Part shown: one piece after another, positions 2,585 through 29,339 of the stretch | Layout: each line of letters begins with the position of its first letter | Numbering within the stretch: position 1 is the stretch's first letter | DNA from: Macrostomum lignano | Taxonomy: Eukaryota | Direction of reading: 5' to 3' | Assembly: GCA_002269645.1 (NCBI GenBank) | Contig: NIVC01004989.1 | Span: 1 to 29,345, forward strand | DNA: 29,345 bases | Notes under the pieces: model-generated | The model's input: only the letters and a program-made list of their open reading frames with translations | The model's database searches: none | Told to the model about the DNA's origin: nothing | Made by a program: the position numbers and the translations under genes

Positions 2585-3628
2585 GTTGCAGAAGGTCTTG
2601 CGCCCCTTGCAGAAGCTATGGTACCCATTGCAGAAGCTATGGTACCTCTTGCAGAAGCTATGGTACCTCTTGCTGAAGCTATGGTACCTCTTGCAGAAGC
2701 TATGGTACCTCTTGCAGAAGCTATGGTACCTCTTGCAGAAGCTATGGTACCCATTGCAGAAGCTATGGTACCTCTTGCAGAAGCTATGGTACCCATTGCA
2801 GAAGCTATGGTACCTCTTGCAGAAGCTATGGTACCTCTTGCAGAAGCTATGGTACCCATTGCAGAAGCTATGGTACCTCTTGCAGAAGCTATGGTACCTC
2901 TTGCAGAAGCTATGGTACCTCTTGCAGAAGCTATGGTACCTCTTGCAGAAGCTATGGTACCTCTTGCAGAAGCTATGGTACCTCTTGCAGAAGCTATGGT
3001 ACCTCTTGCAGAAGCTATGGTACCTCTTGCAGAAGCTATGGTACCTCTTGCAGAAGCTATGGTACCTCTTGCAGAAGCTATGGTACCTCTTGCTGAAGCT
3101 ATGGTACCTCTTGCAGAAGCTATGGTACCTCTTGCAGAAGCTATGGTACCCATTGCAGAAGCTATGGTACCTCTTGCAGAAGCTATGGTACCTCTTGCAG
3201 AAGCTATGGTACCTCTTGCAGAAGCTATGGTACCTCTTGCAGAAGCTATGGTACCTCTTGCAGAAGCTATGGTACCTCTTGCAGAAGCTATGGTACCTCT
3301 TGCTGAAGCTATGGTACCTCTTGCAGAAGCTATGGTACCTCTTGCAGAAGCTATGGTACCTCTTGCAGAAGCTATGGTACCTCTTGCAGAAGCTATGGTA
3401 CCTCTTGCAGAAGCTATGGTACCTCTTGCTGAAGCTATGGTACCTCTTGCAGAAGCTATGGTACCCATTGCAGAAGCTATGATACCTCTTGCAGAAGCTA
3501 TGGTACCCATTGCAGAAGCTATGGTACCTCTTGCAGAAGCTATGGTACCTCTTGCAGAAGCTATGGTACCCATTGCAGAAGCTATGGTACCTCTTGCAGA
3601 AGCTATGGTACCTCTTGCAGAAGCTATA
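2585..3628. repeat. 21-bp minisatellite (GCAGAAGCTATGGTACCTCTT), about 49 copies
   Basis: Highly homogeneous units with a few recurrent variants (CCCATT, GCTGAAG); explains four overlapping repetitive ORFs. Confidence 0.97.
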
Positions 3629-4134
3629 GCCATTCTCGCCGATATGTAGTGAAAGTTTTCTTCGCCAAGAGTCCAATTCGAGAGCCAAAGAAGAAACCAA
3701 CAGAAAAAAGTGTGACAGGATAAAAAAACTGAGAGTAATTGAAAGATGGAGAGAAGAGAGAGAAAGAGAGGGAGAGGGAGGAGGGGCCTGATGGATCAAT
3801 GAATTTTAATCAGTTTTCCCAACCCCAGCCCTGCAAACAGAAGGGTCTCTGAGACCGCTTGGAGCTCTCTCTTTCTTTCTCTGCTGCTGTTTTCACAAGA
3901 GCGGTGTGGATCGGCCAGCCTCCCGCATCATAGTGTGACCGGTGCAACAGTGCAGTAGCGAGCCAATCTAAAGTCGTTAATCATTTCCTGCGCCGAAGAA
4001 GTGCAGAATGGGCCGGTGAAGAATGGATGGATTTCTATTGGCACTTAGCTTTTTGAGACTGCGGTCTTCCATCCTTCATTTTATACTCAGAACTGTGCTA
4101 CTAAATTAGACAGTTTTCTTATCATCATCGATTA

Positions 4135-4720
4135 GATTAGTTCAGATTAGATCTAATCCGAATAGAAAAGAATAGATCAGATAAGAATAGAATAGAATAG
4201 AATATATTAGATTAGATTAGATTAGATTAGATTAGATTAGATTAAATTAAATTAGATTATATTAGACTTGATTAGATGAGACTTGATTAGATTAGATTAG
4301 ACTTAATTAGATTAAACTTGATTAGATTAGATTAGACTTGATTAGATTAGATTAGGTTAGATTAGATTAGATTAGTTTAGATTAGATTAGATGAGATTAG
4401 ATCACTTTAAATTAGATTAGAATAGATTAGATTAGATTAGACTCGATTAGATTAGATTAGATTAGACTTTATTAGATTAGATAAGATTAGATTAGTTTAG
4501 ATTAGATTAGATGAGATTAGATTAGATTAGATTAGATTAGATTAGTTTAAATTAAACTAGATTAGATTAGATTAGATGAGATTAGATTAGGTGAGATTAG
4601 ATTAGATGAGATTAGATTAGATTAGATTAGATTAGATGAGATTAGATTAGATGAGATTAGATAAGTTTAAATTAAACTAGATTAGATTAGATTAGATTAG
4701 ATTAGATTAGATCAGATTAG
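4135..4720. repeat. (ATTAG)n pentanucleotide microsatellite, imperfect
   Basis: Long run of ATTAG with ACTTG, ATGAG and TTTAA variants. Confidence 0.95.
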
Positions 4721-5590
4721 AAAAGAATATATTAAATCGAAAAGTAGCATCGATGCTTCGCTAAATCGCAGCACCGGAACCAAATTAGGCAATCTTTCAA
4801 CTTCTCCACAGTAGAAAATCCCACTTGGAGATTATTCGTCTAAGGAATCTTCGAGTCGAATCGAGTAGCCAGTCGTTACTCCATCAGCTCAAAGCGAATG
4901 AGTAGTTCAAGAGGTGCTCAAATCCCCATGGGAGGCCCAGCCCATCCTCAAACTCCCATCCCAGCGCCAGAGCGTCATCTTCAAAGTGAAGATAAGTGTC
5001 TCTATTCCATGTCCCGGACAGAGGCAAAACTAAATCCTCTGCCTTAGCCATGCCGACATCATTAACCCCTCTGACCGCACAGCTTCCTCATTTCCTGTTT
5101 CGGGCGCCTTCTATCCCTTACTCTATCTCCTTCATAGCCTGCCCTTATCCAGCTTCATCTCTGTCTCCTCGGCTTGCTGTCCTGCGCGGCCGAACGCATT
5201 TCTAATCAAGCCGTCATTCAGTGCAGCTCCGGCTCCAGAGCTTCGCTAGACGAGGCAACTCAATCCCGGTGGCTGCCTGCAGCACGCATGGTGCCCCGGC
5301 GCCGTGACAACTTTTCTATCCTTTGATTCGCGGGTCCTTTGAGGCGCTCGAACCCCCTCGCCCCCTCTCCGACCCCGATGCAACGATCTAAGCATGTAAT
5401 TGGCTTTGCTTTTCTAACTTAGGTCCGTCTGCAGCTGCAGTATGGAGCATGCAGATGCCTGCTTGTACATGCAGATGAGCTTGACGCTTCAATAGGCTTA
5501 CTGGATTTTTGCTCATTTTTAATGAGCTCTATGCTGCACCTCGGTTAATCTACGTCTCTTTGATGGCTCGTTCCTGCTTCTCACACTGCG

Positions 5591-7625
5591 CCCCATCAGT
5601 GCTTGAGACTCTGCCTCTCCGCTCCCCATCAGTGCTTGAGAATCTGCCTCTCCGCTCTCCATCAGTGCTTGAGAATCTGCCCCTCCGCTCTCCATCAGTG
5701 CTTGAGAATCTGCCTCTCCGCTCTCCATCAGTGCTTGAGAATCTGCCCTCCGCTCTCCATCAGTGCTTGAGAATCTGCCTCTCCGCTCTCCATCAGTGCT
5801 TGAGAATCTGCCTCTCCGCTCTCCATCAGTGCTTGAGAATCTGCCTCTCCGCTCTCCATCAGTGCTTGAGAATCTGCCCCTCCGCTCTCCATCAGTGCTT
5901 GAGAATCTGCCTCTCCGCTCTCCATCAGTGCTTGAGAATCTGCCTCTCCGCTCTCCATCAGTGCTTGAGAATCTGCCTCTCCGCTCTCCATCAGTGCTTG
6001 AGAATCTGCCTCTCCGCTCTCCATCAGTGCTTGAGAATCTGCCCCTCCGCTCTCCATCAGTGCTTGAGAATCTGCCTCTCCGCTCCCCATCAGTGCTTGA
6101 GAATCTGCCTCTCCGCTCTCCATCAGTGCTTGAGAATCTGCCTCTCCGCTCTCCATCAGTGCTTGAGAATCTGCCCTCCGCTCTCCATCAGTGCTTGAGA
6201 ATCTGCCTCTCCGCTCTCCATCAGTGCTTGAGAATCTGCCTCTCCGCTCTCCATCAGTGCTTGAGAATCTGCCTCTCCGCTCCCCATCAGTGCTTGAGAA
6301 TCTGCCTCTCCGCTCTCCATCAGTGCTTGAGAATCTGCCTCTCCGCTCTCCATCAGTGCTTGAGAATCTGCCTCTCCGCTCCCATCAGTGCTTGAGAATC
6401 TGCCTCTCCGCTCTCCATCAGTGCTTGAGAATCTGCCTCTCCGCTCCCCATCAGTGCTTGAGAATCTGCCTCTCCGCTCCCATCAGTGCTTGAGAATCTG
6501 CCTCTCCGCTCCCCATCAGTGCTTGAGAATCTGCCTCTCCGCTCTCCATCAGTGCTTGAGAATCTGCCTCTCCGCTCCCATCAGTGCTTGAGAATCTGCC
6601 TCTCCGCTCTCCATCAGTGCTTGAGAATCTGCCCCTCCGCTCTCCATCAGTGCTTGAGAATCTGCCTCTCCGCTCTCCATCAGTGCTTGAGAATCTGCCT
6701 CTCCGCTCTCCATCAGTGCTTGAGAATCTGCCCCTCCGCTCTCCATCAGTGCTTGAGAATCTGCCTCTCCGCTCTCCATCAGTGCTTGAGAATCTGCCTC
6801 TCCGCTCTCCATCAGTGCTTGAGAATCTGCCTCTCCGCTCCCCATCAGTGCTTGAGAATCTGCCTCTCCGCTCTCCATCAGTGCTTGAGAATCTGCCTCT
6901 CCGCTCTCCATCAGTGCTTGAGAATCTGCCTCTCCGCTCCCATCAGTGCTTGAGAATCTGCCTCTCCGCTCTCCATCAGTGCTTGAGAATCTGCCTCTCC
7001 GCTCTCCATCAGTGCTTGAGAATCTGCCTCTCCGCTCCCATCAGTGCTTGAGAATCTGCCTCTCCGCTCTCCATCAGTGCTTGAGAATCTGCCTCTCCGC
7101 TCTCCATCAGTGCTTGAGAATCTGCCTCTCCGCTCCCCATCAGTGCTTGAGAATCTGCCTCTCCGCTCCCCATCAGTGCTTGAGAATCTGCCTCTCCGCT
7201 CTCCATCAGTGCTTGAGAATCTGCCTCTCCGCTCCCCATCAGTGCTTGAGAATCTGCCTCTCCGCTCCCCATCAGTGCTTGAGAATCTGCCTCTCCGCTC
7301 CCCATCAGTGCTTGAGAATCTGCCTCTCCGCTCCCCATCAGTGCTTGAGAATCTGCCTCTCCGCTCTTCATCAGTGCTTGAGAACCTGCCTCTCCGCTCC
7401 CCATCAGTGCTTGAGAATCTGCCTCTCCGCTCTCCATCAGTGCTTGAGAATCTGCCCCTCCGCTCTCCATCAGTGCTTGAGAATCTGCCTCTCCGCTCTC
7501 CATCAGTGCTTGAGAATCTGCCTCTCCGCTCTCCATCAGTGCTTGAGAATCTGCCTCTCCGCTCTCCATCAGTGCTTGAGAATCTGCCTCTCCGCTCCCC
7601 ATCAGTGCTTGAGAATCTGCCTCTC
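5591..7625. repeat. 33-bp minisatellite (CCATCAGTGCTTGAGAATCTGCCTCTCCGCTCT), about 61 copies
   Basis: Unit of 33 bp gives the 11-aa periodicity in the ORF track; scattered 1-bp deletions break the frames, so it is non-coding. Confidence 0.97.
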
Positions 7626-9587: not shown

Positions 9588-10205
9588 TCACTGCAAGTAC
9601 AAATTTTTCTGTAGATACATATTCACGCGCGGATTTTGCTTGTTACTTGTCTGACACTGTGTTTCATGGCAAACGTGCCTCATTGTGAGCCTGAACTCTT
9701 CGTGACGCTGCAGCAATCCATTCTGCTGCACGCGCTCTTTGAAGCAGTCGAAGAATTGGCTGCAGTGCAACTCCTCGCCAGCGGAGTGGCTCCATGTGTA
9801 CAGGCTGTTCGGGTGGCTGTCAGATGTCCGTACTGGCCAGGAAGTGACAATGGCACCGTCTACAACCTCTGCATAGCCTTGAACAATGAAAAGGTTCACG
9901 TCTGCCCTGAGGCGGAGCAGGACGTCTCTTTTCTCAGAGCCTATGGAGCAAAAATCCACCAGGAACTGGGCCACCAGGCCCTCCTGCGCGCCAACAAATC
10001 GATCAATGTGGCTCTCCGTGAGGTCGGCGGCAACTCTGAGTTGAAGAAATTCAGCTAGAGCTAGGCCGAGCCTCCTAATTATAATGGGAATTTCATTCGC
10101 AACGATTTGTTCCACCGCATGACTCGAAACGTATATTCCAGAGGGCTCTTTTATGTGGCTGCACATTATGATGTAAGCGGCTTTGTTTTCAAATTCATAG
10201 TTCTC
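9588..10205 (-). other. Caspase-fold (peptidase C14-like) domain of paralogue 1, catalytic His and Cys apparently substituted
   Basis: Elements in canonical order versus caspase-3: KAAYIIMCS (GLCIIINN), RVAADLTESHIDRF (RNKNDLTREEIVEL), QFLVDFCSIG (SFVCVLLSHG), NLFIVQGY (KLFIIQAC), SLYTWSHSAG (FLYAYSTAPG), SQFFDCF (SWFIQSL), KQNPRVNMYLQKNLYL (KQIPCIVSMLTKELYF). Manual alignment only. Confidence 0.7.
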
Positions 10206-13200
10206 TTCAAACAGATTCATATCATCTGCTTGGTTACCAGGTTCTGCAGCATCATGACTTCTTGTACTTCTTTCTGCATCGTCGTTTCCGCCACTGTTTC
10301 CGCAACCGCTTCCACCACCGTTTCCGCCACCGCTTCCGCCACCGCTTCCGCCACTGCTTCCGCCACCGCTTTCGCCACTGTTTCCGCCACTGTTTCCGCC
10401 ACCATTTCCGCCACTGTTTCTGCAACCGCTTCCGCCACCGCTTCCGCCACCGCTTCCGCCACCGCTTCCGCCACCGCTTCCGCCACCGCTTCCGCCACCG
10501 CTTCCACCACCGCTTCCGCCACTGTTTCCGCCATTGTTTCCACCACCATTTCCGCCACCATTTCCGCCACCATTTCCGCCACCGCTTCCGCCACTGTTTC
10601 CGCCACTGTTGCCGCCACCGCTTCCGCCACTGTTGCCGCCAGCGCTTCCGCCACTGTTTCCGCCACTGTTTCCGCCACCGCTTCCGCCACTGTTTCCGCC
10701 ACTGTTTCCGCCACCGCTTCCGCCACTGTTTCCGCCACTGTTTCCGCCAACGCTTCCGCCACTGTTTCCGCCACTGTTTCCGCCACTGTTTCCGCCACTT
10801 TTTCCGCCACTGTTTCCGCCACTGTTTCCGCCACTGTTTCCGCCAACGCTTCCGCCACTGTTTCCGCCACTGTTTCCGCCACTGTTTCCGCCACTGTTTC
10901 CGCCAACGCTTCCGCCACTGTTTCCGCCACTGTTTCCGCCACTGTTTCCGCCAACGCTTCCGCCACTGTTTCCGCCACTGTTTCCGCCACTGTTTCCGCC
11001 ACCATTTCCGCCACTGTTTCCGCCACCATTTCCGCCACCATTTCCGCCACCATTTCCGCCACTGTTTCCGCCGCTGTTTCCGCCACCATTTCCGCCACTG
11101 TTTCCGCCACCATTTCCGCCACCATTTCCGCCACCATTTCCGCCACTGTTTCCGCCACTGTTTCCGCCACTGTTTCCGCCACTGTTTCCGCCAACGCTTC
11201 CGCCACTGTTTCCGCCACTGTTTCCGCCACTGTTTCCGCCACTGTTTCCGCCACCATTTCCGCCACCGCTTCCGCCACTGTTTCCGCCACCATTTCCGCC
11301 ACCGCTTCCGCCACTGTTTCCGCCACTGTTTCCGCCAACGCTTCCGCCACTGTTTCCGCCACCATTTCCGCCACTGTTTCCGCCACCATTTCCGCCACCA
11401 TTTCCGCCACCATTTCCGCCACCGCTTCCACCACTGTTTCCGCCACTGTTTCCGCCACCATTTCCGCCACTGTTTCCGCCACCATTTCCGCCACTGTTTC
11501 CGCCACCATTTCCGCCACCGCTTCCGCCACTGTTTCCGCCACTGTTTCCGCCACTGCTTCCGCCACCGCTTCCGCCACCGCTTCCGCCATTGTTGCCGCC
11601 ACCATTTCCGCCACCATTTCCGCCACCATTTCCGCCACCGCTTCCGCCACTGTTTCCGCCACTGTTTCCGCCACTGCTTCCGCCACCGCTTCCGCCACTG
11701 TTTCCGCCACTGCTTCCGCCACCGCTTCCGCCATTGTTGCCGCCACCATTTCCACCACCATTTCCGCCACCATTTCCGCCACCGCTTCCGCCACTGTTTC
11801 CGCCACTGTTTCCGCCACCATTTCCGCCACTGTTTCCGCCACCATTTCCGCCACTGTTTCCGCCACCATTTCCGCCACCGCTTCCGCCACTGTTTCCGCC
11901 ACTGTTTCCGCCACTGCTTCCGCCACCGCTTCCGCCACCGCTTCCGCCATTGTTGCCGCCACCATTTCCGCCACCATTTCCGCCACCATTTCCGCCACCG
12001 CTTCCGCCACTGTTTCCGCCACTGTTTCCGCCACTGCTTCCGCCACCGCTTCCGCCACTGTTTCCGCCACTGCTTCCGCCACCGCTTCCGCCATTGTTGC
12101 CGCCACCATTTCCACCACCATTTCCGCCACCATTTCCGCCACCGCTTCCGCCACTGTTTCCGCCACTGCTTCCGCCACCGCTTCCGCCATTGTCTTTTTC
12201 GTCTCCCTCTCCACCATTCGTACTAGTTCTTTTAGCGCAACTTTTTTCCCCTTGTAAGCGTGTAGGTTTGACGCCCCTGTCTAAATATTTTATCAATAGC
12301 ACCAATTTTCTGATTCCAAATTCTGTGAGAAGATCAATGATAGAGTAATTAAAAATTTCTTGATGAACGAGAGGCCTATTCAACCGACTATCTTCAGCAA
12401 TATCATTTAGTTTACCACAAAATCGCAGAAACTGTTCAACTGCGCTCAGATATTTATCGTCGCCAACTTCAACCGAACAACCGACATTTGAGCTATTTTT
12501 ATTAACTTCTTTACCGTCACCATCACTGCAGTACTTTGCGGTCTTAGCGTGACCTTTGAGTGAATCTTCACCATTTTTTGCTGCACGTGTATCTCCATCG
12601 CTCTTTAAAGTACATACAGACTCAGGCTGAGTCGGATCAGTAGTGTCGTCATTGCCACATGTTTCCGATTCGCTCATAGAAATTCGATGGCTACTCATTT
12701 CATAGATTCTGCAAAGCAATTAAAAATAAATGATGCTGCAGTTTCTACTTCGTCAGCCTAAGACTGATTATTCCTACCTGGACCTGATGAAGGCCTCCAC
12801 TTCCGAGTGCTTCATGCGTCTGGCCCACTCCTCGGCTGTCAAATCGAAATCGCCTTTCACCTGCCAGTCTTTGACATCCTTAACAAACGGAGCCAGCGCT
12901 CCGATGGCGTCGAGGTTCCCCTCCTTGGCGCACAAAATGATCGGCGTGTTGTCGCAGCAGTCCGGCAGTCGGTGGTCGGCTCCAGCCTCCAGGAGGGCGC
13001 TGACCACGTCAGCAGCGTTCCTCTCCGCTGCGTGCGCGAGGGCGGTGAGGCCCTGAATGTCCTGGAAGGGAGCCGGTTAGGAAAAACTATGGCTAATTGG
13101 GAGTCAATTTAGAGCAACACCTGGTCTGCCAAGATATTTTAAAGACTCTAACCTGACAGTCGACATCCAGACCCAGCTGCCTGTGCTGGAGCAGCAGCTC

Positions 13201-13380
13201 TATCATTTTGACATCTTTGTTTATTGCAGCTAGGATCAGCGCGTTCCTTCTGCAGTAGTCTTTGTCTTCCAGAGATGCAAAATCCTCAGGCCGATCCCTC
13301 AGGTACTGCTCCACCGCTGTGAGATCATTTTCCTTAACTTTCACCAGGAAATGGGTCTTGCCGCTGATGTCGCGCGTCAT
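9588..13380 (-). CDS. Ankyrin-repeat / Gly-rich / caspase-like (predicted pseudo-caspase) protein, paralogue 1; 3 exons, 1210 aa
   Basis: join(complement) 13153..13380, 12778..13061, 9588..12708 = 3633 nt, open from ATG to TGA. Introns 13062..13152 (91 nt, CAG|GTTAGA...TTCCAG, phase 0) and 12709..12777 (69 nt, AG|GTAGGA...TTGCAG, phase 2). Ankyrin motifs: RNALILAAINKDVKMIELLL, GLTALAHAAERNAADVVSALLEAGAD, NTPIILCAKEGNLDAIGAL. Same intron positions and phases as paralogue 2. Confidence 0.88.
10281..12190 (-). repeat. Coding 12-bp tandem repeat (GGCGGAAACAGT and variants) encoding about 630 aa of GGNS/GGNG/GGSG
   Basis: In frame throughout exon 3 of paralogue 1; contains a 360-bp higher-order duplication (11461-11760 identical to 11821-12120). 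Confidence 0.92.
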
Positions 13381-13711
13381 TTCTGCCTGTCTGGGTGAGT
13401 CAGATTCAGCTGCTTAAAAATGAATTTAGAACAATATACTCGTACAAACATGGATCTTGTCTATGGCTCCTTTATAGCCAATCAACAATGCCATAATCAT
13501 TTAATATTGCTCATAAGCTTCAATATTCAAATTTCTAGCTTATATTTTAAATTCGTTTCGACCATAGACAAACGGTCTCGTCGACTTTTGAGCAGATATG
13601 CATGGAAAGCTCAAGTAGAGTGACGACGCTACCACGATTTTCTTGGGAATGAGATGGAGGCCTATAAGGAATCAAGGAGTTATCAAGTTGTCCTTGTAAG
13701 GAATATATATT

Positions 13712-14521
13712 TGCTCATCTGAAATAGTCTATGGTCGAGTTCTTTCCTCCAAACTTGGAATTTACCCCCCTAGGAATCTATTGGCTGATGAAAGTTAAAA
13801 ATAATCCCCCGTAGGACTTGATTGGCTGCTGAATCAGTCTATCAAATACATCTTTGGATTTCCTTCAAATTTTCAGCAGCTAGACATGCTTGTAGGTAGA
13901 AAAGCCCAAATAAAGCATCACGCTGTTGCCTGCGGACGTCTCACCGGTCCTGATCATTAATCACAATGAGACTGGAATGGACGACCGGTGTGAGCCTTAA
14001 CTGGTTTTGTTTTTTATTTAATAGCGAGGGTTGAAATTACGTCTCCAATTGCTGTCTAGGATAATCCTCTTGGGGCAAGGATCTTCCTCCTTAACACTAA
14101 GGTTGAAGTGATAACAAATGTTACCGACTTTAAACGACCAGTGTTCGTTATCGGAGCAGTACATAATTATTAAGATGCCGATTATTAATATAGCTAGCTC
14201 TAGGTGCATAAAATTCCTAAATTATGAATTAATAATTATGGTCGCTGCCACCAGTCCAATGTTCCTACTATTAAGATGTAAATATAGAGTTAACAGGTAA
14301 CACAGAGACACAGAGACAGAAGCATACTGCTACAATATTCTTTGAAAACACTCAAAGTCAAACTCACACCCCGATCTTCGAATTCCCCCTGACTGATTCA
14401 GCAGCCAGTCAAGTCCTACGGGGGATTATTTTTAACTTTTATCAGCCAATAGATTACTAGGGGGGGTAAATTCCAAAAGTTTGGAGGAAAGAACTCGACC
14501 ATAGACTATTTCAGATGAGCA
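13712..14521. repeat. ~130-bp inverted repeat pair (13712..13839 and 14391..14521) around a ~550-bp spacer; MITE/foldback-like
   Basis: The arms are reverse complements with only a few substitutions and small indels. No TSD found. The motif CGACCATAGACTATTT recurs near 9132. Confidence 0.8.
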
Positions 14522-16176
14522 CTCCAGTGTATTCCTTCATCCATGGCTAGGCGCTTTCCAGAGGTAAGTACTCGCTTCTAGAATAATGTTCAAATATTTT
14601 CGTGGGGAAAAACTTACATATGTTTACCGTAGAACACTTGAACTGTTGGACTGTCTTTCTTCTAATAGTTGTGTGCTGTATTGTTAGAGATTGTTTAAAT
14701 ACGTTTATAACGTCGCAGAGCAAAAAGTGTTTTTCTGTGCAGTCGTTTCTTGTTATGACAGACAACAACGCTCTTTCGTCTATTATGCAGCGATTCTATA
14801 CATATCGCGTCATTTCTACTCAACAAGGTTCGGTGCAGTGCTCTCAAAATGAGTCTTCTATATGAGAATACTTTATAAATATTAATAGTTCAACCTTAAA
14901 GCATCTCTGGATGAAAACTCTGATGATGTTTTGTTGTGTACTTGCTTTGCAGCTTGCTTATTGTGTACGAGTGGGGTTAAAATAGCAAATGATGCTCATG
15001 TACTAAAAATGGTTGTCGGTATCTATCTAGTAAAGCGCTAAAACTTTAAACTCTGGGATGCTAGCTCGCACTTAAAGAATTTCAGTCTTTCGAATTTCGA
15101 CGCTTCGTTAACACACTCAGGTCACCGACCTTTTTGTCTGCATAGCAGAAGTGAAGCTTTCAAACTCAGTCAATAGATGCTAAGGTAACTAATACGTATC
15201 AGAACAAAAAGCTAGGTAAAACGTAACAGTAACTTACGAACAGGACTTTTATCACACGTAAATATGTATGGGACGTATTACGTTGACCTCAATAGTTCCA
15301 AATCGTTGCTGAAGTCGAACAGAAGATTATGATAGCACGTTTATAGAAATTCCAACAAGCTACATGTAGCTACTTCTTGCGTTTAAAACGACAAAAACTC
15401 AGCCATAAAATATGCTGGCTAAAAGTTATAAAACTTGAGTTTCCGGTGTTTTGCTTACAAGCATATACCCAAGTAATATCATCGTGCAATTCTGATCTGG
15501 AATTGTTATGATTTCGAAACTGAAAAGTTACTTTTCTTTAAGTGAACATTTACTTTTAGAAAACTTTTGCATCAAAAACCTGACGCAGGAAATACACATC
15601 GTAATGTTTCTGAAGCAAGGACAGGCTCAGCCTTAAGCTGTGCCCCAATAAAGTATGCAATATGAACTTCAAACGTATACGATTCTTGATAGTTCAAAGA
15701 TACAGCGACCCAGTACGGTGAATAAATACATCTGAAAAAATATGCTAAAGGCAGAACAAAGGCCAGCTATGCAAGTTCAAGATGTTTATCTACAGATGAC
15801 GCCCATCGCAGGTTGCAAAAACTGTCGCCAAGGCAGCAATCCGCAGGTCACAAAGCAAGAGGATCGGGGAAACACGATAGAATTGGATCATCTCTGCAGC
15901 GGATGACAGGACAGTCCGCAAATATCTAGGAGATTAAAACAGATCTAAAAGTACATCAAAGTACAAACACAAGCTCCGAGTCCATCGCAAAGTTTAGCAT
16001 AATGAAAGTAGCAAAGAAGTAACGCCAGCAGAGGACGGTACGGTCTTCACATTCTGAACCCCAGGGTTATACTTTAGTAGAATATTGCAGATAAAGTGTC
16101 AAAGCTATCAGCAACTAAAGACAATCTCAACTTAAACTTTGCATATTAAACAATGTAAGAAATCTTCAACTCTCTG

Positions 16177-16800
16177 TCATTGCAGGTACAACTGCTTGCA
16201 AAGGTAATTGTCAAAGAACGGATTTTGAATTCTGTTTGTTTGAAGCTGCGTTATGCCACGCACGTGCGCCATTGTGAGCGTAAACTCCTCGCTCACCTGA
16301 TTCCATGAATTCTTCTCTACATGCTCGCTAAAACAGCTGAAAAAGTCGCTGCCCTGCATGTCCTCGGTGACCGAGTGGCTGCAGATGTACAGGCAATTCT
16401 CGTGACTGTTGTGAATTCGTTCTGGTAAACTAAACACTCGGCCATTCGCGTCTCTGTGGTCAAGGCTGCCCTGCACTATGAATAGATTTACATCTGCCCT
16501 GGGATGAAGGAGAGCCATCATGTAGTCAACCCTAATTGAGCAAAAGTCCACAAGAAACTGAGCAACAAGGCCAGACTGTGGGCTCATAAATCGTGCTAAG
16601 GAGGGTTGGTCCAGATCTGCAGCAGTGCTCGGCTTGAGATGATTCTTCAAGTCCTTCATCTTTCGGATAATTTTTCCGATTGATGCCGTAATTTCATTAG
16701 TGGCCTGCATCCTGTATATTTGCCCTGTCGAATCCACTAGAGAACTAACGGAAATGATATATGCCGCTTTAGTTTGAAATCCGTAGCTTTCTAAGACTGT
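16177..16800 (-). other. Caspase-fold domain of paralogue 2, catalytic His and Cys apparently substituted
   Basis: KAAYIISVS, AADLDQPSLARF, QFLVDFCSIR, NLFIVQGS, CLYICSHS, GSDFFSCF (cf. GSWFIQSL), IQNPFFDNYLCKQLYLQ. Blocks are conserved with paralogue 1. Confidence 0.7.
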
Positions 16801-18830
16801 TTCTAAGTCAGTCTGCCGATTGCGGCACCCACCAGCAATTCTTTGACCTCCTCCACCCCCTCCTCCACCGCCTCCTCCACCGTCTCCTCCACCGTCTCCT
16901 CCACCGTCTCCTCCACCGTCTCCTCCACCGTCTCCTCCACCGCCTCCTCCACCGCCTCCTCCACCGTCTCCTCCACCGTCTCCTCCACCGTCTCCTCCAC
17001 CGCCTCCTCCACCGCCTCCTCCACCGCCTCCTCCACCGCCTCCACCGCCTCCACCGCCTCCTCCACCGCCTCCACCGCCTCCACCGTCTCCACCGCCTCC
17101 TCCACCGCCTCCACCGCCTCCACCGTCTCCTCCACCGTCTCCTCCACCGTCTCCTACACCGCCTCCTCCACCGCCCAGTCCACTGCCTCCTACACCGCCT
17201 TCTGCACCGCCACCTCCACCACTGAATCCTTCGCCATCTCCTTCATCGATTCCGTCATCCTTATCGCCATGTGTTCCACCCTGTTTATCAGAGGCGCCGC
17301 TAAGCATGCTCTTCTTTAACGAACTGTCGCAGTTGACTTTGTTTACTTCAGCTAAAAGCATGAGTAGAAATCGTTTCGCAGGGCTTGTACTGTGCTTAAG
17401 TTGAATTCCGCTTAATGTGTAGGCAATAAGCACGGATAAAATTGACTTCCCAGTAACGCTGTGCTCAATGCTTTTTAGCCCGCTATCATTGCCTTTTCCA
17501 TGCCTGTGCTCTTTACCGTCTTCTATTTTCCGATCAGAAACGACCTCTCCGTCACAGAACGCTGTTCCGATGTGTTCAAAAAGTTGGTCCGTTTCCGAAT
17601 AAAGCTGCTCGACATTGCTTGCAGTGCTGCCGCTTTGACCACTGCTACGAGTCTCCATTAGCACGAGTGAGGACATCTTGTGGCCTTCGTTCAGCTGATT
17701 GTTTCTGCTGTCCTTAGAGCCGCCATTTCCAATGTCAATAATTGTTATTTTCAACATTTTCTTTATCAGCGTAGCGAGCTCCTTGACGAGTTGAGTGATC
17801 AGTCGAGTGAATTTATCATGCATCGAAGAGTATTTGACCTCTTTTTTAGTTGACTTGAAAACTTCTGCGCGAACGATTTTATCAACATTTTGATCGACGT
17901 TGCCTTTGCGTTGCTCTGTCACGCACATTTCGCTCTCTTCAAGTGGCGCGATCCCAACCTGGTTGTCAGTGTCGCCAAGCTGATCAAATTTTATTGATTG
18001 ACCGATACGACTTTGAGAACACTCTCGACTGCCAGAGCATAGTTCCTTGATTCTGAGAAGCGAAAGAAATGATGCAGTTAACATTTTACTGCGGTAACGA
18101 GCAACTCTTATTTGTAAATCAAAAGCAGAGCTAAAACAGACTGAGCTTACCTGGACCTGATGAAGGCCTCCACTTCCGAGTGCTTCATGCGTCTGGCCCA
18201 CTCCTCGGCTGTCAAATCGAAATCGCCTTTCACCTGCCAGTCTTTGACATCCTTAACAAACGGAGCCAGCGCTCCGATGGCGTCGAGGTTCCCCTCCTTG
18301 GCGCACAAAATGATCGGCGTGTTGTCGCAGCAGTCCGGCAGTCGGTGGTCGGCTCCAGCCTCCAGGAGGGCGCTGACCACGTCAGCAGCGTTCCTCTCCG
18401 CTGCGTGCGCGAGGGCGGTGAGGCCCTGAATGTCCTGGAAGGGTTGGTCGGTATTTGTTTACTTGCAGTCGCCAGGGCTTTTGAGCACAGCCCTGAGCAC
18501 GCACAAGCATGGATACGAAGCTACGCAGGCACTTGCTCACACAGGGTATACCGCGGCCTTGACTTTTTCAATATCCAGACACAGAAGTTTCTACGGTAGT
18601 ATGAAGAATCTTACCCGACAGTCAATTTTCAAGTTCCAGCTCCTGTTCTGAAGCAGCAAATTCGTCATCGGAAGGTCTTTATTAATGGCAGCTAGAATCA
18701 AGGCATTCCGTTCGCAGTAGTCTTTGTCTGCCAGAGCTTCACAAACTCCATCGCTATTAGCTAGGTAGTTCTTCACAGCTTCGTAAATTCCGCTCTTCAC
18801 CTTTCTTAGAAAGTCGCTCCTGCCGCTCAT
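16177..18830 (-). CDS. Ankyrin-repeat / Gly-rich / caspase-like (predicted pseudo-caspase) protein, paralogue 2; 3 exons, 791 aa from ATG 18830
   Basis: join(complement) 18615..18830, 18151..18434, 16177..18052 = 2376 nt, open to TGA. Introns 18435..18614 (180 nt, CGG|GTAAGA...TTCCAG, phase 0) and 18053..18150 (98 nt, AG|GTAAGC...TCTCAG, phase 2). Homologous to paralogue 1 in ankyrin exons and C-terminal domain. The start may lie further upstream. Confidence 0.86.
16849..17236 (-). repeat. Coding Gly-rich repeat (GGDG/GGGG; GGTGGAGGAGAC-type 9-12 bp units), about 130 aa
   Basis: In frame within exon 3 of paralogue 2, immediately before the caspase-like domain. Confidence 0.9.
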
Positions 18831-20625: not shown

Positions 20626-21584
20626 ATAAGGCGTAGGAACGCTTCAAAAAGTGTGGGGGGGGGCAGGTTCAGTGACGGATTTGGGGGGGGGGCGCACAGG
20701 GGGCACGCCCCCGTCGAGTTAGATTTGAAAAATGCACATTATCATGTACCGATTATTTTCAGAATCCATCTTGTCAGCACTCATTTTATAAAGCGCCGCA
20801 GGCACTCATTTTAGCACCGCAGGCACTCATTTTATAAAGCGCCGCAGGCACTCATTTTAGCACCGCAGGCCCTCATTTTATAAAGCGCCGCAGGCACTCA
20901 TTTTAGCGCCGCAGGCACTCATTTTAGCGCCGCAGGCACTCATTTTAGCGCCGCAGGCACTCATTTTAGCACCACAGGCACTCATTTTAGCGCCACAGGC
21001 ACTCATTTTAGCGCCGCAGGCACTCATTTTAGCGCCGTAGGCACTCATTTTAGCACCACAGGCACTCATTTTAGCGCCACAGGCACTCATTTTAGCGCCA
21101 CAGGCACTCATTTTAGCACCGCAGGCACTCATTTTAGCACCGCAGGCACTCATTTTAGCACCGCAGGCACTCATTTTAGCGCCGCAGGCACTCATTTTAG
21201 CACCGCAGGCCCTCATTTTATAAAGCGCCGCAGGCACTCATTTTAGCGCCGCAGGCACTCATTTTAGCGCCACAGGCCCTCATTTTAGCGCCGCAGGCAC
21301 TCATTTTAGCACCGCAGGCACTCATTTTATAAAGCGCCGCAGGCACTCATTTTATAAAGCGCCACAGGCACTCATTTTAGCGCCGCAGGCACTCATTTTG
21401 GAGCTGCAGGCGCTATGTTTTGTCACCCTGCAGCAAAATGCATTCATGCAAAGCAGCAAAAACCAAAAATAAGCAAGAAATCTAAATTTTACATTTAAAA
21501 TGTGGAGGCGCCAAGATACCATTACTGCCCCCCCCCCACAATTTTAAAAAGGCCTCACTGGCCCCCCTCATTTCTACGCCTATG
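20626..21584. mobile_element. Non-autonomous DNA transposon (MITE-like), 959 bp, with 9-bp TSD and internal minisatellite
   Basis: Direct repeat ATCTGTTGT at 20617..20625 and 21585..21593. Termini are ATAAGGCGTAG and CTACGCCTATG (reverse complement CATAGGCGTAG). Subterminal inverted AAAA.TGTG(G)nCAG and CTG(C)nACA.TTTT. No coding capacity. Confidence 0.78.
20777..21412. repeat. 21-bp minisatellite (TTTTAGCGCCGCAGGCACTCA; 25-bp TTTTATAAAG variant), about 29 copies
   Basis: Direct repeats visible; source of the SACGAKM ORF. Confidence 0.95.
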
Positions 21585-23513: not shown

Positions 23514-24328
23514 AGAGCCAATCCTTGGTGTTACAGAGCCAATCCCTGGTGTTACACAGAATCAATCCCTGGTGTTACACAGAATCAATCCCTGGTGTTA
23601 CACAGAGCCAATCCCTGGTGTTACAGAGCCAATCCCTGGTGTTACACATAGTCAATCCCTGGTGTTACACAGAGCCAATCCCTGGTGTTACACAGAATCA
23701 ATCCCTGATGTTACACAGAATCAATCCCTGATGTTACACAGAGCCAATCCCTGATGTTACACAGAATCAATCCCTGGTGTTACAAATAGTCAATCCCTGG
23801 TGTTACAGAGCCAATCCCTGGTGTTACAGAGCCAATCCCTGGTGTTACAGAGCCAATCCCTGGTGTTACACATAGTCAATCCCTGGTGTTACAGAGCCAA
23901 TCCCTGGTGTTACACAGAGTCAATCCCTGGTGTTACAGAGCCAATCCCTGGTGTTACAGAGCCAATCCCTGGTGTTACAGAGCCAATCCCTGGTGTTACA
24001 CAGAGTCAATCCCTGGTGTTACACAGAATCAATCCCTGGTGTTACACATAGTCAATCCCTGGTGTTACAGAGTCAATCCCTGGTGTTACAGAGCCAATCC
24101 CTGGTGTTACACAGAGTCAATCCCTGGTGTTACAGAGCCAATCCCTGATGTTACACAGAATCAATCCCTGGTGTTACAGAATCAATCCCTGGTGTTACAG
24201 AGCCAATCCCTGGTGTTACACAGAATCAATCCCTGATGTTACACAGAATCAATCCCTGGTGTTACACATAGTCAATCCCTGGTGTTACACAGAGCCAATC
24301 CCTGGTGTTACACAGAGCGAATCCCTGG
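23514..24328. repeat. 19/21-bp minisatellite (AGAGCCAATCCCTGGTGTTAC[AC]), about 40 copies, in DPYS/CRMP intron
   Basis: Direct repeats with mixed unit lengths. Confidence 0.96.
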
Positions 24329-24623: not shown

Positions 24624-25064
24624 CTTGGGGTAAATGAGGTACATATTTTGTTAAATAATAAATACTTTGTTATAACGCCAGTCTCGTAATTTCCGGATTT
24701 TTATTTTGAAATCCAGTTATCCATTTCAAGTTAAATTCAATTTGTAAGGATTTGATTTTAAAGCAGTTCCAAAAAAGGAGCAACAAGAATGAAAATATGA
24801 TTGAGAAAATGAATTTGAAAAGCTGCTACACCAAGAGTAACGACGCTTGCACCAAATATAAAAAGATCGAATGCTTTTTCAGCAGTAGAGTCACACGTCA
24901 ACAGCAACACTCATCCTGCATTAAAAAGTGCTAATCTTGTGTCTATTAATTTAGCTAGTCTAATATTATGATAGTATAAATGCAAGCACTTACCCTTAAT
25001 GCCATATCATGCTCTGGATTTTTCATAGTAAGCAAATATATATGCAAATGTTCGAATTGTGCTT

Positions 25065-26030
25065 AGATGAGGGGTACAGGTAGATGCATGGTACAGATAG
25101 ATGCAGGGTAGATAGATGCGGGGTACAGATGGATGCAGGGTAGATAGATGAGGGTACAGATAGATGCAGGGTTGATGGATGCAGGGTACAGATGGATGCA
25201 GGGTAGATAGATGAGGGTACAGATGGATGCAGGGTAGATAGATGAGGGTACAGATAGATGCAGGGTTGATGGATGCAGGGTACAGATGGATGCAGGGTAG
25301 ATAGATGAGGGTACAGATAGATGCAGGGTTGATGGATGCAGGGTACAGATGGATGCAGGGTACAAATAGATGCAGGATACAGATAGATGCAGGGTACAGA
25401 TGGATGCAGGATACAGATAGATGCAGGGTACAGATGGATGCAGGGTACAGATAGATGCAGGGTACAGATGGATGCAGGGTACAGATGGATGCAGGGTACA
25501 GATAGATGCAGGGTACATATAGACGCAGGGTACAGATAGATGCAGGGTACAGATGGATGCAGGGTACATATATACGCAGGGTACAGATTGATGCAGGGTA
25601 CATATAGACGCAGGGTACAGATGGATGCAGGGTACAGATAGATGCAGGGTACATATAGACGCAGGGTACAGATAGATGCAGGGTACAGATGGATGCAGGG
25701 TACATATATACGCAGGGTACAGATTGATGCAGGTACATATAGACGCAGGGTACAGATTGATGCAGGGTACAGATAGATGCAGGGTACAGATGGATGCAGG
25801 GTATATATAGACGCAGGGTACAGATAGATGCAGGGTACAGATAAACGCAGGGTACAGATAGATGCAGGGTACAGATAGATGCAGGGTACATATAGACGCA
25901 GGTACAGATAGATGCAGGGTACAGATAGATGCAGGGTACAGATGGATGCAGGGTACAGATAGACGCAGGGTACAGATGGATGCAGGGTACAGATGGATGC
26001 AGGGTACAGATAGACGCAGGGTAGATAGAT
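25065..26030. repeat. 17-bp minisatellite (GATGCAGGGTACAGATA), about 56 copies, in DPYS/CRMP intron
   Basis: Direct repeats; the 17-aa periodicity in the ORF track equals 3 units. A 21-bp GGTAGATAGAT variant occupies the left part. Confidence 0.96.
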
Positions 26031-26966: not shown

Positions 26967-27857
26967 CAAGGACACCTAATTTAGCGCCCCAAGGACATCT
27001 AGTTTGATCCCCTAAGGACACCTAATTTATCGCCCCAAGTACATCTAGTTTATCGCCCCAAGGACACCTAATTTAGCGCCCCAAGGACATCTAGTTTGAT
27101 CCCTAAGGACACCTAATTTATCGCCCCAAGTACATCTAGTTTAGCGTCCCAAGGACACCTAATTTATCGCCCCAAGGACACCTAATTTAGTGCCCAAGGA
27201 CATCTAGTTTAACGCCCCAAGGACACCTAATTTAGCGCCTCAAGGACATCTAGTTTAGCGTCCCAAGGACACCTAATTTATCGCCCCAAGGACACCTAAT
27301 TTAGCGCCCCAAGGACATCTAGTTTAGCGTCCCAAGGACACCTAATTTATCGCCCCAAGGACACCTAGTTTAGCGTCCAAGGACACCTAATTTATCGCCC
27401 CAAGGACACCTAGTTTAGCGTCCCAAGGACACCTAATTTATCGCCCCAAGAACACCTAGTTTAGCGTCCCAAGAACATCTAGTTTGACCCCCTAAGGACA
27501 CCTAATTTATCGCCCCAAGGACACCTAATTTAGCGCCCCAAGGACATCTAGTTTAGCGTCCCAAGGACACCTAATTTATCACCCAAGGACACCTAATTTA
27601 TCGCCCCAAAACATCTAGTTTGACCCCCTAAGGACACCTAATTTATCGCCCCAAGGACACCTAATTTAGCGCCTCAAGGACATCTAGTTTAGCGTCCCAA
27701 GGACACCTAATTTATCGCCCAAGGACACCTAGTTTAGCGTCCCAAGGACACCTAATTTATCGCCCCAAGGACACCTAGTTTAGCGTCCCAAGGACACCTA
27801 ATTTATCGCCCCAAGAACACCTAGTTTAGCGTCCCAAGTACATCTAGTTTGACCCCC
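26967..27857. repeat. ~23-bp minisatellite (CAAGGACACCTAATTTAKCGCCC and CAAGGACATCTAGTTTAGCGTCC variants), about 39 copies
   Basis: Direct repeats with two alternating variant types. Confidence 0.95.
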
Positions 27858-28476: not shown

Positions 28477-29339
28477 TTAAGGCGATGGAGACTCGTCAGA
28501 TAAGTCCTGCGAATCAGGATAGTGCCGCTTTCCGCTGCCCTGCTCGGGTGCACTTGGGCGCTTCTTCGCCTTCTTGCGCAGGTTGTCCCCCGCATGCTTA
28601 AGAGCCGAGATGACGTGTTTTTCTACATCTCGCTCAGATGGCCTCTCATGAGGCTTGTCGTCTTTGTACATCGTGGAAACGGCTCCTGGAATTGGATTGG
28701 TGGTTTTATTCTGTCAAATTTATTCTACTCTATGCTCCATAGTCCCTACTTTAAGTAGACATTATTCACTTGAATTTGTCTAAATGTTTCATTCTGAACC
28801 AGTTTCATTGAAGAAACTATACTATAAAATTAGGCAAAATGATTCTGATTCTAGATTTACAATTACACACTTTCGGATTTCTGTAAACTTACGCTTCAGA
28901 AGAGGAAGCAGTGTTGTCTGGAAGCCAAGGCTGTCATCTGTTCCCGCGCCGCCGGACCTCTCGGCCAAGCCTCGACCGCAATAGTTTAGCTGGGCCATCA
29001 TTTCAGGGGTGATACACTTTAGCAGCATCCGTCGGATGGTGCTCGCAACACTGTCACCCCGGCAGCGTGCCAGTTGCGTGCGCAGAACTTTCTGTGCCTC
29101 CTTATCTGATGCCAGCTTTAGATAGCCCGCCCACGAAGCAGCTGGTTGCCATTCAGCTTCGGGCAGCTCGATGATAGTGCCGCCAACAGTCGAGTTGCCC
29201 TGCCTGTTGAGGGCCGCCAGAATCTCCCGCTGCTGCTGTTGTATTGTTGCGTCTCGCTGCTCTTGGAGCTGCTGGCCGCGCAACACCAGCAACATCAGCT
29301 GCGAGATACCCTTCAGACTCGCCAAGTCACCGAACTTGG
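28477..29339 (-). CDS. DUF4806-like protein, last two exons (5' part beyond the window)
   Basis: Exons 28893..29339 (TAACAG| acceptor, phase 1; AAGC|GTAAGT donor) and 28477..28685 (TTCCAG|GA), intron 207 nt. Spliced product ...LRTQLARCRGDSVASTIRRMLLKCITPEMMAQLNYCGRG...LGFQTTLLPLLKRAVSTMYK...SERDVEKHVISALKHAGDNLRKK fits the recalled DUF4806 pattern (GG...V..IL..L....A...W.G...F..L....I..AV...E.E..I..WL..A.DR). Confidence 0.65.

Follow-up and report, generated by a model that had tools for sequence, protein, structure and literature searches.

Caspases with an N-terminal ankyrin prodomain, the ANK caspases, form the one initiator-type class that is specific to flatworms, and have been suggested to be an adaptation to parasitism and a potential drug target. 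To our knowledge, nothing is known about how these enzymes are activated or restrained. Two other systems provide the closest comparisons. c-FLIP(L) (CFLAR) is a dead paralogue of caspase-8 that arose by gene duplication; it carries DED prodomains, has Tyr in place of the catalytic Cys, and has been demonstrated to form a heterodimer with caspase-8. In C. elegans, CED-3 is restrained by CSP-3 and CSP-2, caspase homologues that are partial or inactive. Here we describe two spliced genes, A and B, within a 29,345-nucleotide stretch of DNA from the free-living flatworm Macrostomum lignano (contig NIVC01004989.1, positions 1 to 29,345; hereafter ‘the window’). Their predicted proteins combine ankyrin repeats, a long Gly-rich tract and a conserved C-terminal domain. 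On sequence comparison we put at roughly 0.55 the probability that this domain is caspase-derived and catalytically dead.

The flatworm ANK caspases constitute a published clade and architecture (Krasovec et al., Genome Biol Evol 2024, PMC11463336), first identified, by the account given there, in Schistosoma in 2014. Examples include S. mansoni XP_018647858.1, E. granulosus CDS23854 and M. lignano PAA88208 (PMC11463336). The text and Table S1 of the preprint (10.1101/2023.12.11.571055; PMC11463336) place M. lignano and free-living flatworms among the animals without ANK caspases; the supplementary FASTA of the same preprint (part 40) lists M. lignano PAA88208. In Pfam searches this protein has an Ank_2 match (E=5.6e-25), a Q-rich linker and a Peptidase_C14 match (E=9e-55); it keeps both SHG and QACRG and ends in LRKKIYFK. 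An active-type paralogue with the same type of prodomain is thus present in M. lignano, and ANK caspases are therefore not confined to parasitic flatworms. A first-pass annotation of the window, made from its letters alone and without a search, knew of no characterised protein with this architecture. The novelty this implied does not hold, because the fusion of ankyrin repeats to a caspase had already been published for flatworms and PAA88208 is an instance of it. What would be new here is a dead, Gly-linked variant in a free-living flatworm.

Both genes lie on the minus strand within 9588-18830, and each has three exons arranged on the same plan:

Gene A, 9588-13380, minus strand: exons 13380-13153, 13061-12778 and 12708-9588; predicted protein of 1210 residues
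Gene A exon 1, 13153-13380, minus strand: start codon (ATG at 13380), N-terminal cap and first ankyrin repeat (Pfam Ank_2), 76 codons; donor CAG/GTTAGA
Gene A exon 2, 12778-13061, minus strand: ankyrin repeats 2-4 and C-terminal cap; acceptor ttccag/GAC, donor CAG/GTAGGA, phase 2
Gene A exon 3, 9588-12708, minus strand: middle region, Gly/Ser/Asn tract, C-terminal domain and stop codon; acceptor tttgcag/A, in frame to the open reading frame (ORF) 9588-12719
Gene B, 16177-18830, minus strand: exons 18830-18615, 18434-18151 and 18052-16177; predicted protein of 791 residues
Gene B exon 1, 18615-18830, minus strand: start codon, cap and first ankyrin repeat (Pfam), 72 codons
Gene B exon 2, 18151-18434, minus strand: ankyrin repeats, identical in sequence to gene A exon 2
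Gene B exon 3, 16177-18052, minus strand: middle region, poly-Gly/Asp tract, C-terminal domain and stop codon

The introns are 91 and 69 nt long in gene A, and 180 and 98 nt long in gene B; all four are bounded by GT-AG and have polypyrimidine tracts. The two genes share the same intron phases, and each splice leads in frame into the long last exon; the junction of exons 2 and 3, in phase 2, puts both genes back in the frame of the long terminal ORF. The two spliced genes first proposed, with ankyrin repeats, a Gly tract and a conserved C-terminal domain, are confirmed at the stated positions, on the minus strand. No canonical poly(A) signal was found within 400 nt of either stop codon. The ankyrin repeats are clear in both proteins (Pfam Ank_2, E=1.3e-15 for A and 2.1e-13 for B), with Ank, Ank_2, Ank_3, Ank_4 and Ank_5 all exceeding their cut-offs. 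There are three canonical repeats together with degenerate capping repeats, for which the earlier count of four to five is acceptable.

The argument for caspase ancestry concerns the C-terminal domain, whose landmarks are as follows:

Gene A C-terminal domain, 9591-10226, minus strand: 212 residues, candidate dead caspase-like domain
Gene B C-terminal domain, 16180-16812, minus strand: 211 residues
Gene A GLVAQFLVDFCSIG, 9939-9980, minus strand: longest block invariant between A and B, holding the strand earlier read as SHG changed to SIG
Gene A LFIVQ, 9879-9893, minus strand: matches the caspase LFFIQ strand that precedes the catalytic Cys; the Cys position is Tyr (9873-9875)
Gene A p10-like segment, 9594-9785, minus strand: S..SQFF..EEF.LTM.HV..KQNP....YLQKNLYL, ending one residue before the stop
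Gene B motif sites, minus strand: LFIVQ at 16471-16485, Ser at the Cys position at 16465-16467, p10-like segment at 16183-16374

The two domains are 47% identical over 212 residues (E=8e-54). Their nonsynonymous divergence (dN) is 0.49 and their synonymous sites are saturated (pS 0.79), which indicates that the duplication is old and that both copies have long been kept as coding sequence under purifying selection. The blocks invariant between A and B are KAAYII, GLVAQFLVDFCSI, RADVNLFIVQG, EEF.LTM.HV, QNP and YL.K.LYLQ, and C93, H138, H147, C161 and H184 are also invariant. The two longest of the invariant blocks are the candidate beta3 and beta4 strands, which are also the most conserved blocks of caspases.

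We compared the domain with caspase profiles of 21-27 sequences, drawn from human caspases, database caspase-3 orthologues and flatworm caspases from the preprint supplement; these profile-profile tests were targeted and hypothesis-driven. In hhalign, query residues ~151-211 aligned end to end with the p10 subunit up to its C-terminal LxKxLYF (P=0.0047-0.0064), with SQFF placed on GSWF, EEF.LTM.HV on the alpha5 helix and KQNP....YLQKNLYL on KQxP....LxKxLYF. This score was attained by 2 of 400 column shuffles, and the reversed query was null-like. Against a caspase hidden Markov model (HMM), both paralogues took the same register at their C-termini, at a level attained by 4 of 2000 shuffles for A and 71 of 2000 for B; the p10-like segment of gene A scored 5.1 bits in HMMER. 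When collinear matches were chained, the score was 72.5 against a null of 44.1 +/- 7.9, or 52.5 against 29.1 +/- 5.2 with a chaining penalty. Two sets of 300 column shuffles reached it once and not at all, respectively, and none of 300 shuffles of twelve-residue blocks did so (z ~3.6-4.5); a larger caspase profile gave the same chain result. Chaining in hhalign also brings in LFIVQ, aligned on LFFIQ over 5 columns (score 14.9), directly before the catalytic Cys.

A canonical catalytic Cys is absent from both copies, the sequence reading LFIVQ-G-Y in A and LFIVQ-G-S in B, with the QACxG loop reduced. If the homology is real, the assignment of Tyr (A) and Ser (B) to the Cys position is robust. 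The codons quoted for these sites in the first-pass annotation are right: 9942-9944 encodes Ile (FCSIG) and 9873-9875 Tyr (VQGY) in gene A, and 16534-16536 encodes Ile (FCSIR) and 16465-16467 Ser (VQGS) in gene B. The catalytic His is less easily placed. None of the candidate mappings gives a His conserved in both copies, and the mapping proposed earlier, onto SIG/SIR, is ambiguous. The ~19-residue deletion inferred between the two sites is arithmetically correct, but only under that mapping, which is insecure.

The N-terminal, p20-like half is where the comparison is least stable. Its beta1 strand could be AAYIIM or IPIIIRR, there are two candidate registers for beta5, and FLVDFC is placed either on the beta3/His strand or on the F.GD.C motif of alpha3, depending on the aligner; MAFFT with caspase-3 orthologues deletes the His strand and shifts beta5. 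The original proposal that every p20/p10 element is present in order consequently survives for the p10 end and LFIVQ, which are collinear, but not for the N-terminal half, where registers are unstable and P is 0.2-0.3. Similarly, the pseudo-caspase reading as a whole has the targeted profile-profile similarity and the substituted Cys position in its favour, but the Pfam and Protein Data Bank (PDB) searches were negative.

A number of observations weigh against caspase ancestry and should be set out together. The HH-suite probability is 6-7%, and a P of 0.005 is not significant database-wide; moreover, the caspase hypothesis arose from inspecting the same sequence. In the N-terminal half the alignment reaches only the P values just given, and the register of that half differs between aligners at beta1, the ‘SHG’ strand and beta5. 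A caspase-3-only profile gave P=0.22 in hhalign, and semi-global profile alignment was not significant, the reversed query scoring equally. Pfam PF00656 (Peptidase_C14), the check suggested in the first-pass annotation, was unmatched even at E<=10, whether whole domains or halves were searched. There was no caspase chain among the PDB HMMER matches of either the full or the p10-only profile, and no homologue among 1.84 billion representative proteins in an exhaustive HMM search. AlphaFold2, run on the two-sequence alignment with A first or B first, returned models with pLDDT 33.8 and 34.0, which are unusable. Nor is the caspase-like signal any nearer to the ANK caspases: an ANK-clade-only profile gave P=0.3, worse than the general profile, for a sequence too divergent to place in a tree, and the ankyrin module is 30% identical to that of PAA88208, no better than to unrelated ANK proteins. 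Finally, the closest database relative of gene A, the M. lignano protein A0A1I8GBE0 discussed below, spans from inside the first ankyrin repeat to the first residues of the Gly tract and stops there.

These searches also produced candidates that we rejected. The sole match of the exhaustive HMM search, a repetitive bacterial adhesin, was judged spurious, and a word-indexed protein search with the C-terminal domain gave no matches. The top PDB match, SSU72 phosphatase (E=0.039 over the C-terminal half), is attributed to chance, as its catalytic motif is uncovered and a related query lacks the match. NCBP3, Spectrin_SYNE1 and IcmF_helical appeared only as sub-threshold Pfam noise with whole domains, halves and middle regions.

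The alternative that survives best is that the C-terminal domain is lineage-specific and unrelated to caspases, so that the proteins are ANK scaffolds bearing an orphan effector or binding domain whose motifs resemble those of caspases by chance, both being alpha/beta domains. We consider this possible, although we lean away from it. The unbiased database searches, all of them negative, are what it would predict, as are the low HH-suite probability, the caspase-3-only and semi-global results and the unstable p20 register; in addition, ankyrin repeats occur in fusion with a great many unrelated domains. Chance resemblance accounts less well for a collinear chain that, under three nulls, outscores 299-300 of 300 shuffles while the reversed query is null-like, or for a best match that, in each paralogue, is anchored at the extreme C-terminal end of query and caspase profile alike. 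LFIVQ, furthermore, falls in the right place and order, and M. lignano has an active caspase of the same layout. Were caspase ancestry nevertheless wrong, the genes would represent an orphan family of ANK proteins restricted to Macrostomum, and be of modest interest.

A second alternative concerns the gene models rather than the fold, and turns on the low-complexity tracts that separate the two ends of each protein:

Gene A low-complexity tract, 10266-12218, minus strand: ~635-650 residues, 61% Gly, 20% Ser and 18% Asn; a 12-bp unit in 159 copies at 10284-12193 (TRF)
Gene B Gly-rich tract, 16846-17220, minus strand: 110-126 residues, 85% Gly and 10% Asp; a 12-bp minisatellite of ~32 copies at 16847-17220

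The long Gly-rich tracts noted at first reading are thus real, though they are 12-bp minisatellites. According to this alternative, the models are in part artefacts: the minisatellite could be intronic, lie past the transcript end or owe its length to an assembly artefact, and the ankyrin repeats and C-terminal domain would belong to separate products or to a much shorter protein. A long ORF is indeed not proof of translation here, because the 12-bp repeat is open in every frame, all six included. The sole annotated relative ends exactly at the tract start, no database protein carries the C-terminal domain, and the window holds at least 10 other, clearly non-coding minisatellite arrays. Against this, the unique sequence 5' of the tract and that 3' of it share one frame in gene A and gene B alike, despite 4% indels in the tract of gene B. 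The C-terminal domain has neither a start codon context of its own nor an upstream exon, yet is under purifying selection, and the known ANK caspases have long low-complexity linkers too. We infer from the continuity of frame in both genes that a single mRNA carries the Gly tract, as translated sequence, together with the C-terminal domain. A single protein is the reading favoured by the shared frame of the flanks together with a constrained C-terminal domain that has no other means of expression, and we regard artefactual models as unlikely.

The remaining alternative, a still-active caspase-fold protease with relocated residues, for example the Cys of LVDFCS (C93) acting with an invariant His (H138, H147 or H184), draws on the five invariant Cys and His residues and on the tolerance of clan CD enzymes for large sequence change, but is very improbable given that the canonical Cys position is Tyr or Ser, that the QACRG loop is cut to QGY/QGS, and that we know of no caspase with its Cys on the beta3 strand.

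The window is unusually dense in minisatellite arrays, which make up about one-third of its length and have periods of 5, 12, 17, 21, 23, 24, 33 and 42 bp, with each array at most 2 kb long; across all TRF arrays, periods span 5 to 91 bp. Many of them produce long spurious ORFs in several frames. Apart from the coding tracts of genes A and B, they are located as follows:

Minisatellite arrays: 1-112, 696-1413, 1880-2030, 2603-3627, 4130-4721
Minisatellite arrays, continued: 5593-7625, 20792-21411, 23514-24328, 25064-26023, 26967-27850

Between the ankyrin module and the Gly tract, the middle regions of A (12184-12708) and B (17221-18052) have no detectable similarity to each other. That of gene A is 70-80% identical to the corresponding part of A0A1I8GBE0 and holds a stretch that is hydrophobic and probably helical (SAVEQFLRF...IIDLLTEFGIRKLVLLIKYL); rather than serving only as linker, it may form a small folded element.

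A0A1I8GBE0 (UniRef100; M. lignano, ANK_REP_REGION domain-containing protein, 288 residues) is the sole close relative of the gene A ankyrin and middle regions among 5.8 billion proteins. It is 75% identical to gene A over 286 residues, in an alignment that opens at the second ankyrin repeat and closes where the Gly tract begins. It is therefore a true family member through the ankyrin and middle regions, but its model is truncated, with neither Gly tract nor C-terminal domain, and so is silent on the caspase-like part. We conclude that genes A and B are old tandem paralogues in a Macrostomum-specific family of at least three members, and that the public model of A0A1I8GBE0 probably breaks at the minisatellite. 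The lack of a C-terminal homologue among the 1.84 billion proteins is explained by annotation having missed this domain. These genes go unseen in existing annotation, since assemblies and gene models are interrupted at the coding minisatellite.

The divergence between the two genes has one exception. A block of 296 bp is identical at all 296 positions between gene A (12775-13070) and gene B (18148-18443) in blastn, and corresponds to exon 2 plus 9 and 3 intron bases. Outside this block the genes are beyond the reach of blastn, with a synonymous divergence (dS) of 1.28 in exon 1 and saturated dS in the C-terminal domain. The identity suggests either very recent gene conversion confined to one conserved exon, or an assembly artefact.

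How, then, do the window proteins compare with the described systems? They resemble the ANK caspases in having an N-terminal ankyrin prodomain, a long low-complexity linker and a C-terminal domain (210-260 residues in ANK caspases) that ends just past L-x-K-x-(I/L)-Y-(F/L), and PAA88208 comes from the same genus. A degenerate ANK-caspase paralogue is a natural reading because PAA88208 shares this layout and end motif within Macrostomum. The differences are equally plain: ANK caspases have intact SHG and QACRG, score 186 bits against Peptidase_C14 and have a Q-rich linker, whereas the window proteins have no Pfam C14 score, Tyr or Ser at the Cys position, a Gly-rich linker and no specific ankyrin similarity to them. 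As in c-FLIP, the prodomain is of the type found in the active paralogue and the catalytic Cys is replaced, by Tyr in both c-FLIP and gene A; in contrast, c-FLIP is readily recognised as Peptidase_C14, has DED prodomains and forms a demonstrated heterodimer with caspase-8. With CSP-3 they share a caspase resemblance that is clear only for the small-subunit-like part, here residues ~148-211, and a proposed action through binding of an active caspase; CSP-3, however, is short and has no prodomain, whereas the window proteins, of 791 and 1210 residues, have ANK and Gly-rich regions.

Elsewhere in the window, tblastn with caspases found no active caspase gene. Motif fragments at 13776-13931 on the minus strand, in intergenic DNA upstream of gene A (LFYLQAC, GNPKMYLI and GIIFNFHQPID; E=3-19), were rejected as a decayed caspase exon; they are attributed to chance because they contain stop codons, lie in mixed frames and are in the wrong order. 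No Rfam family or tRNA was found. A 167-residue ORF at 28822-29325 on the minus strand (MASLKGISQLML...CITPEMMAQLNYCGRG...) has no Pfam match; it may resemble a domain of transposon-derived metazoan proteins.

Each predicted protein comprises an ankyrin module, a fast-evolving disordered middle region, a hypervariable Gly spacer encoded by a minisatellite, and a putative C-terminal alpha/beta domain. If the C-terminal domain is indeed a dead caspase relative, the window proteins would be non-catalytic kin of the flatworm ANK caspases, in which ankyrin repeats and a low-complexity linker precede an active caspase. By analogy with c-FLIP and caspase-8, and with CSP-3 and CED-3, the ankyrin module would recruit the protein to whichever partner or platform the active enzyme uses, where the dead domain could pair with an active caspase monomer through its conserved p10-like surface; such pairing would block or tune activation of that caspase, and the Gly-rich minisatellite would encode a flexible spacer whose length varies. 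We see the likeliest role as that of a non-catalytic caspase partner that would inhibit or tune activation, a mechanism argued by analogy; both the fold and the interaction with caspases are what we infer.

Tentatively, and with rather less assurance than for the ancestry of the domain itself, these genes may point to a FLIP-like regulatory layer of the ANK-caspase pathway in Macrostomum: a small, fast-evolving tandem family of dead, ANK-prodomain caspase relatives, in which the length of the spacer would depend on how far a coding minisatellite has expanded or contracted. Taken with PAA88208, this would mean that the ANK-caspase system predates parasitism, and that the split into enzyme and pseudo-enzyme lies at the base of Rhabditophora. 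If so, a dead paralogue with the same prodomain, in a free-living, genetically tractable and regenerating flatworm, would be an entry point to the ANK-caspase pathway, and the ‘enzyme plus decoy paralogue’ pattern of caspase-8 and c-FLIP would be extended to a new lineage.

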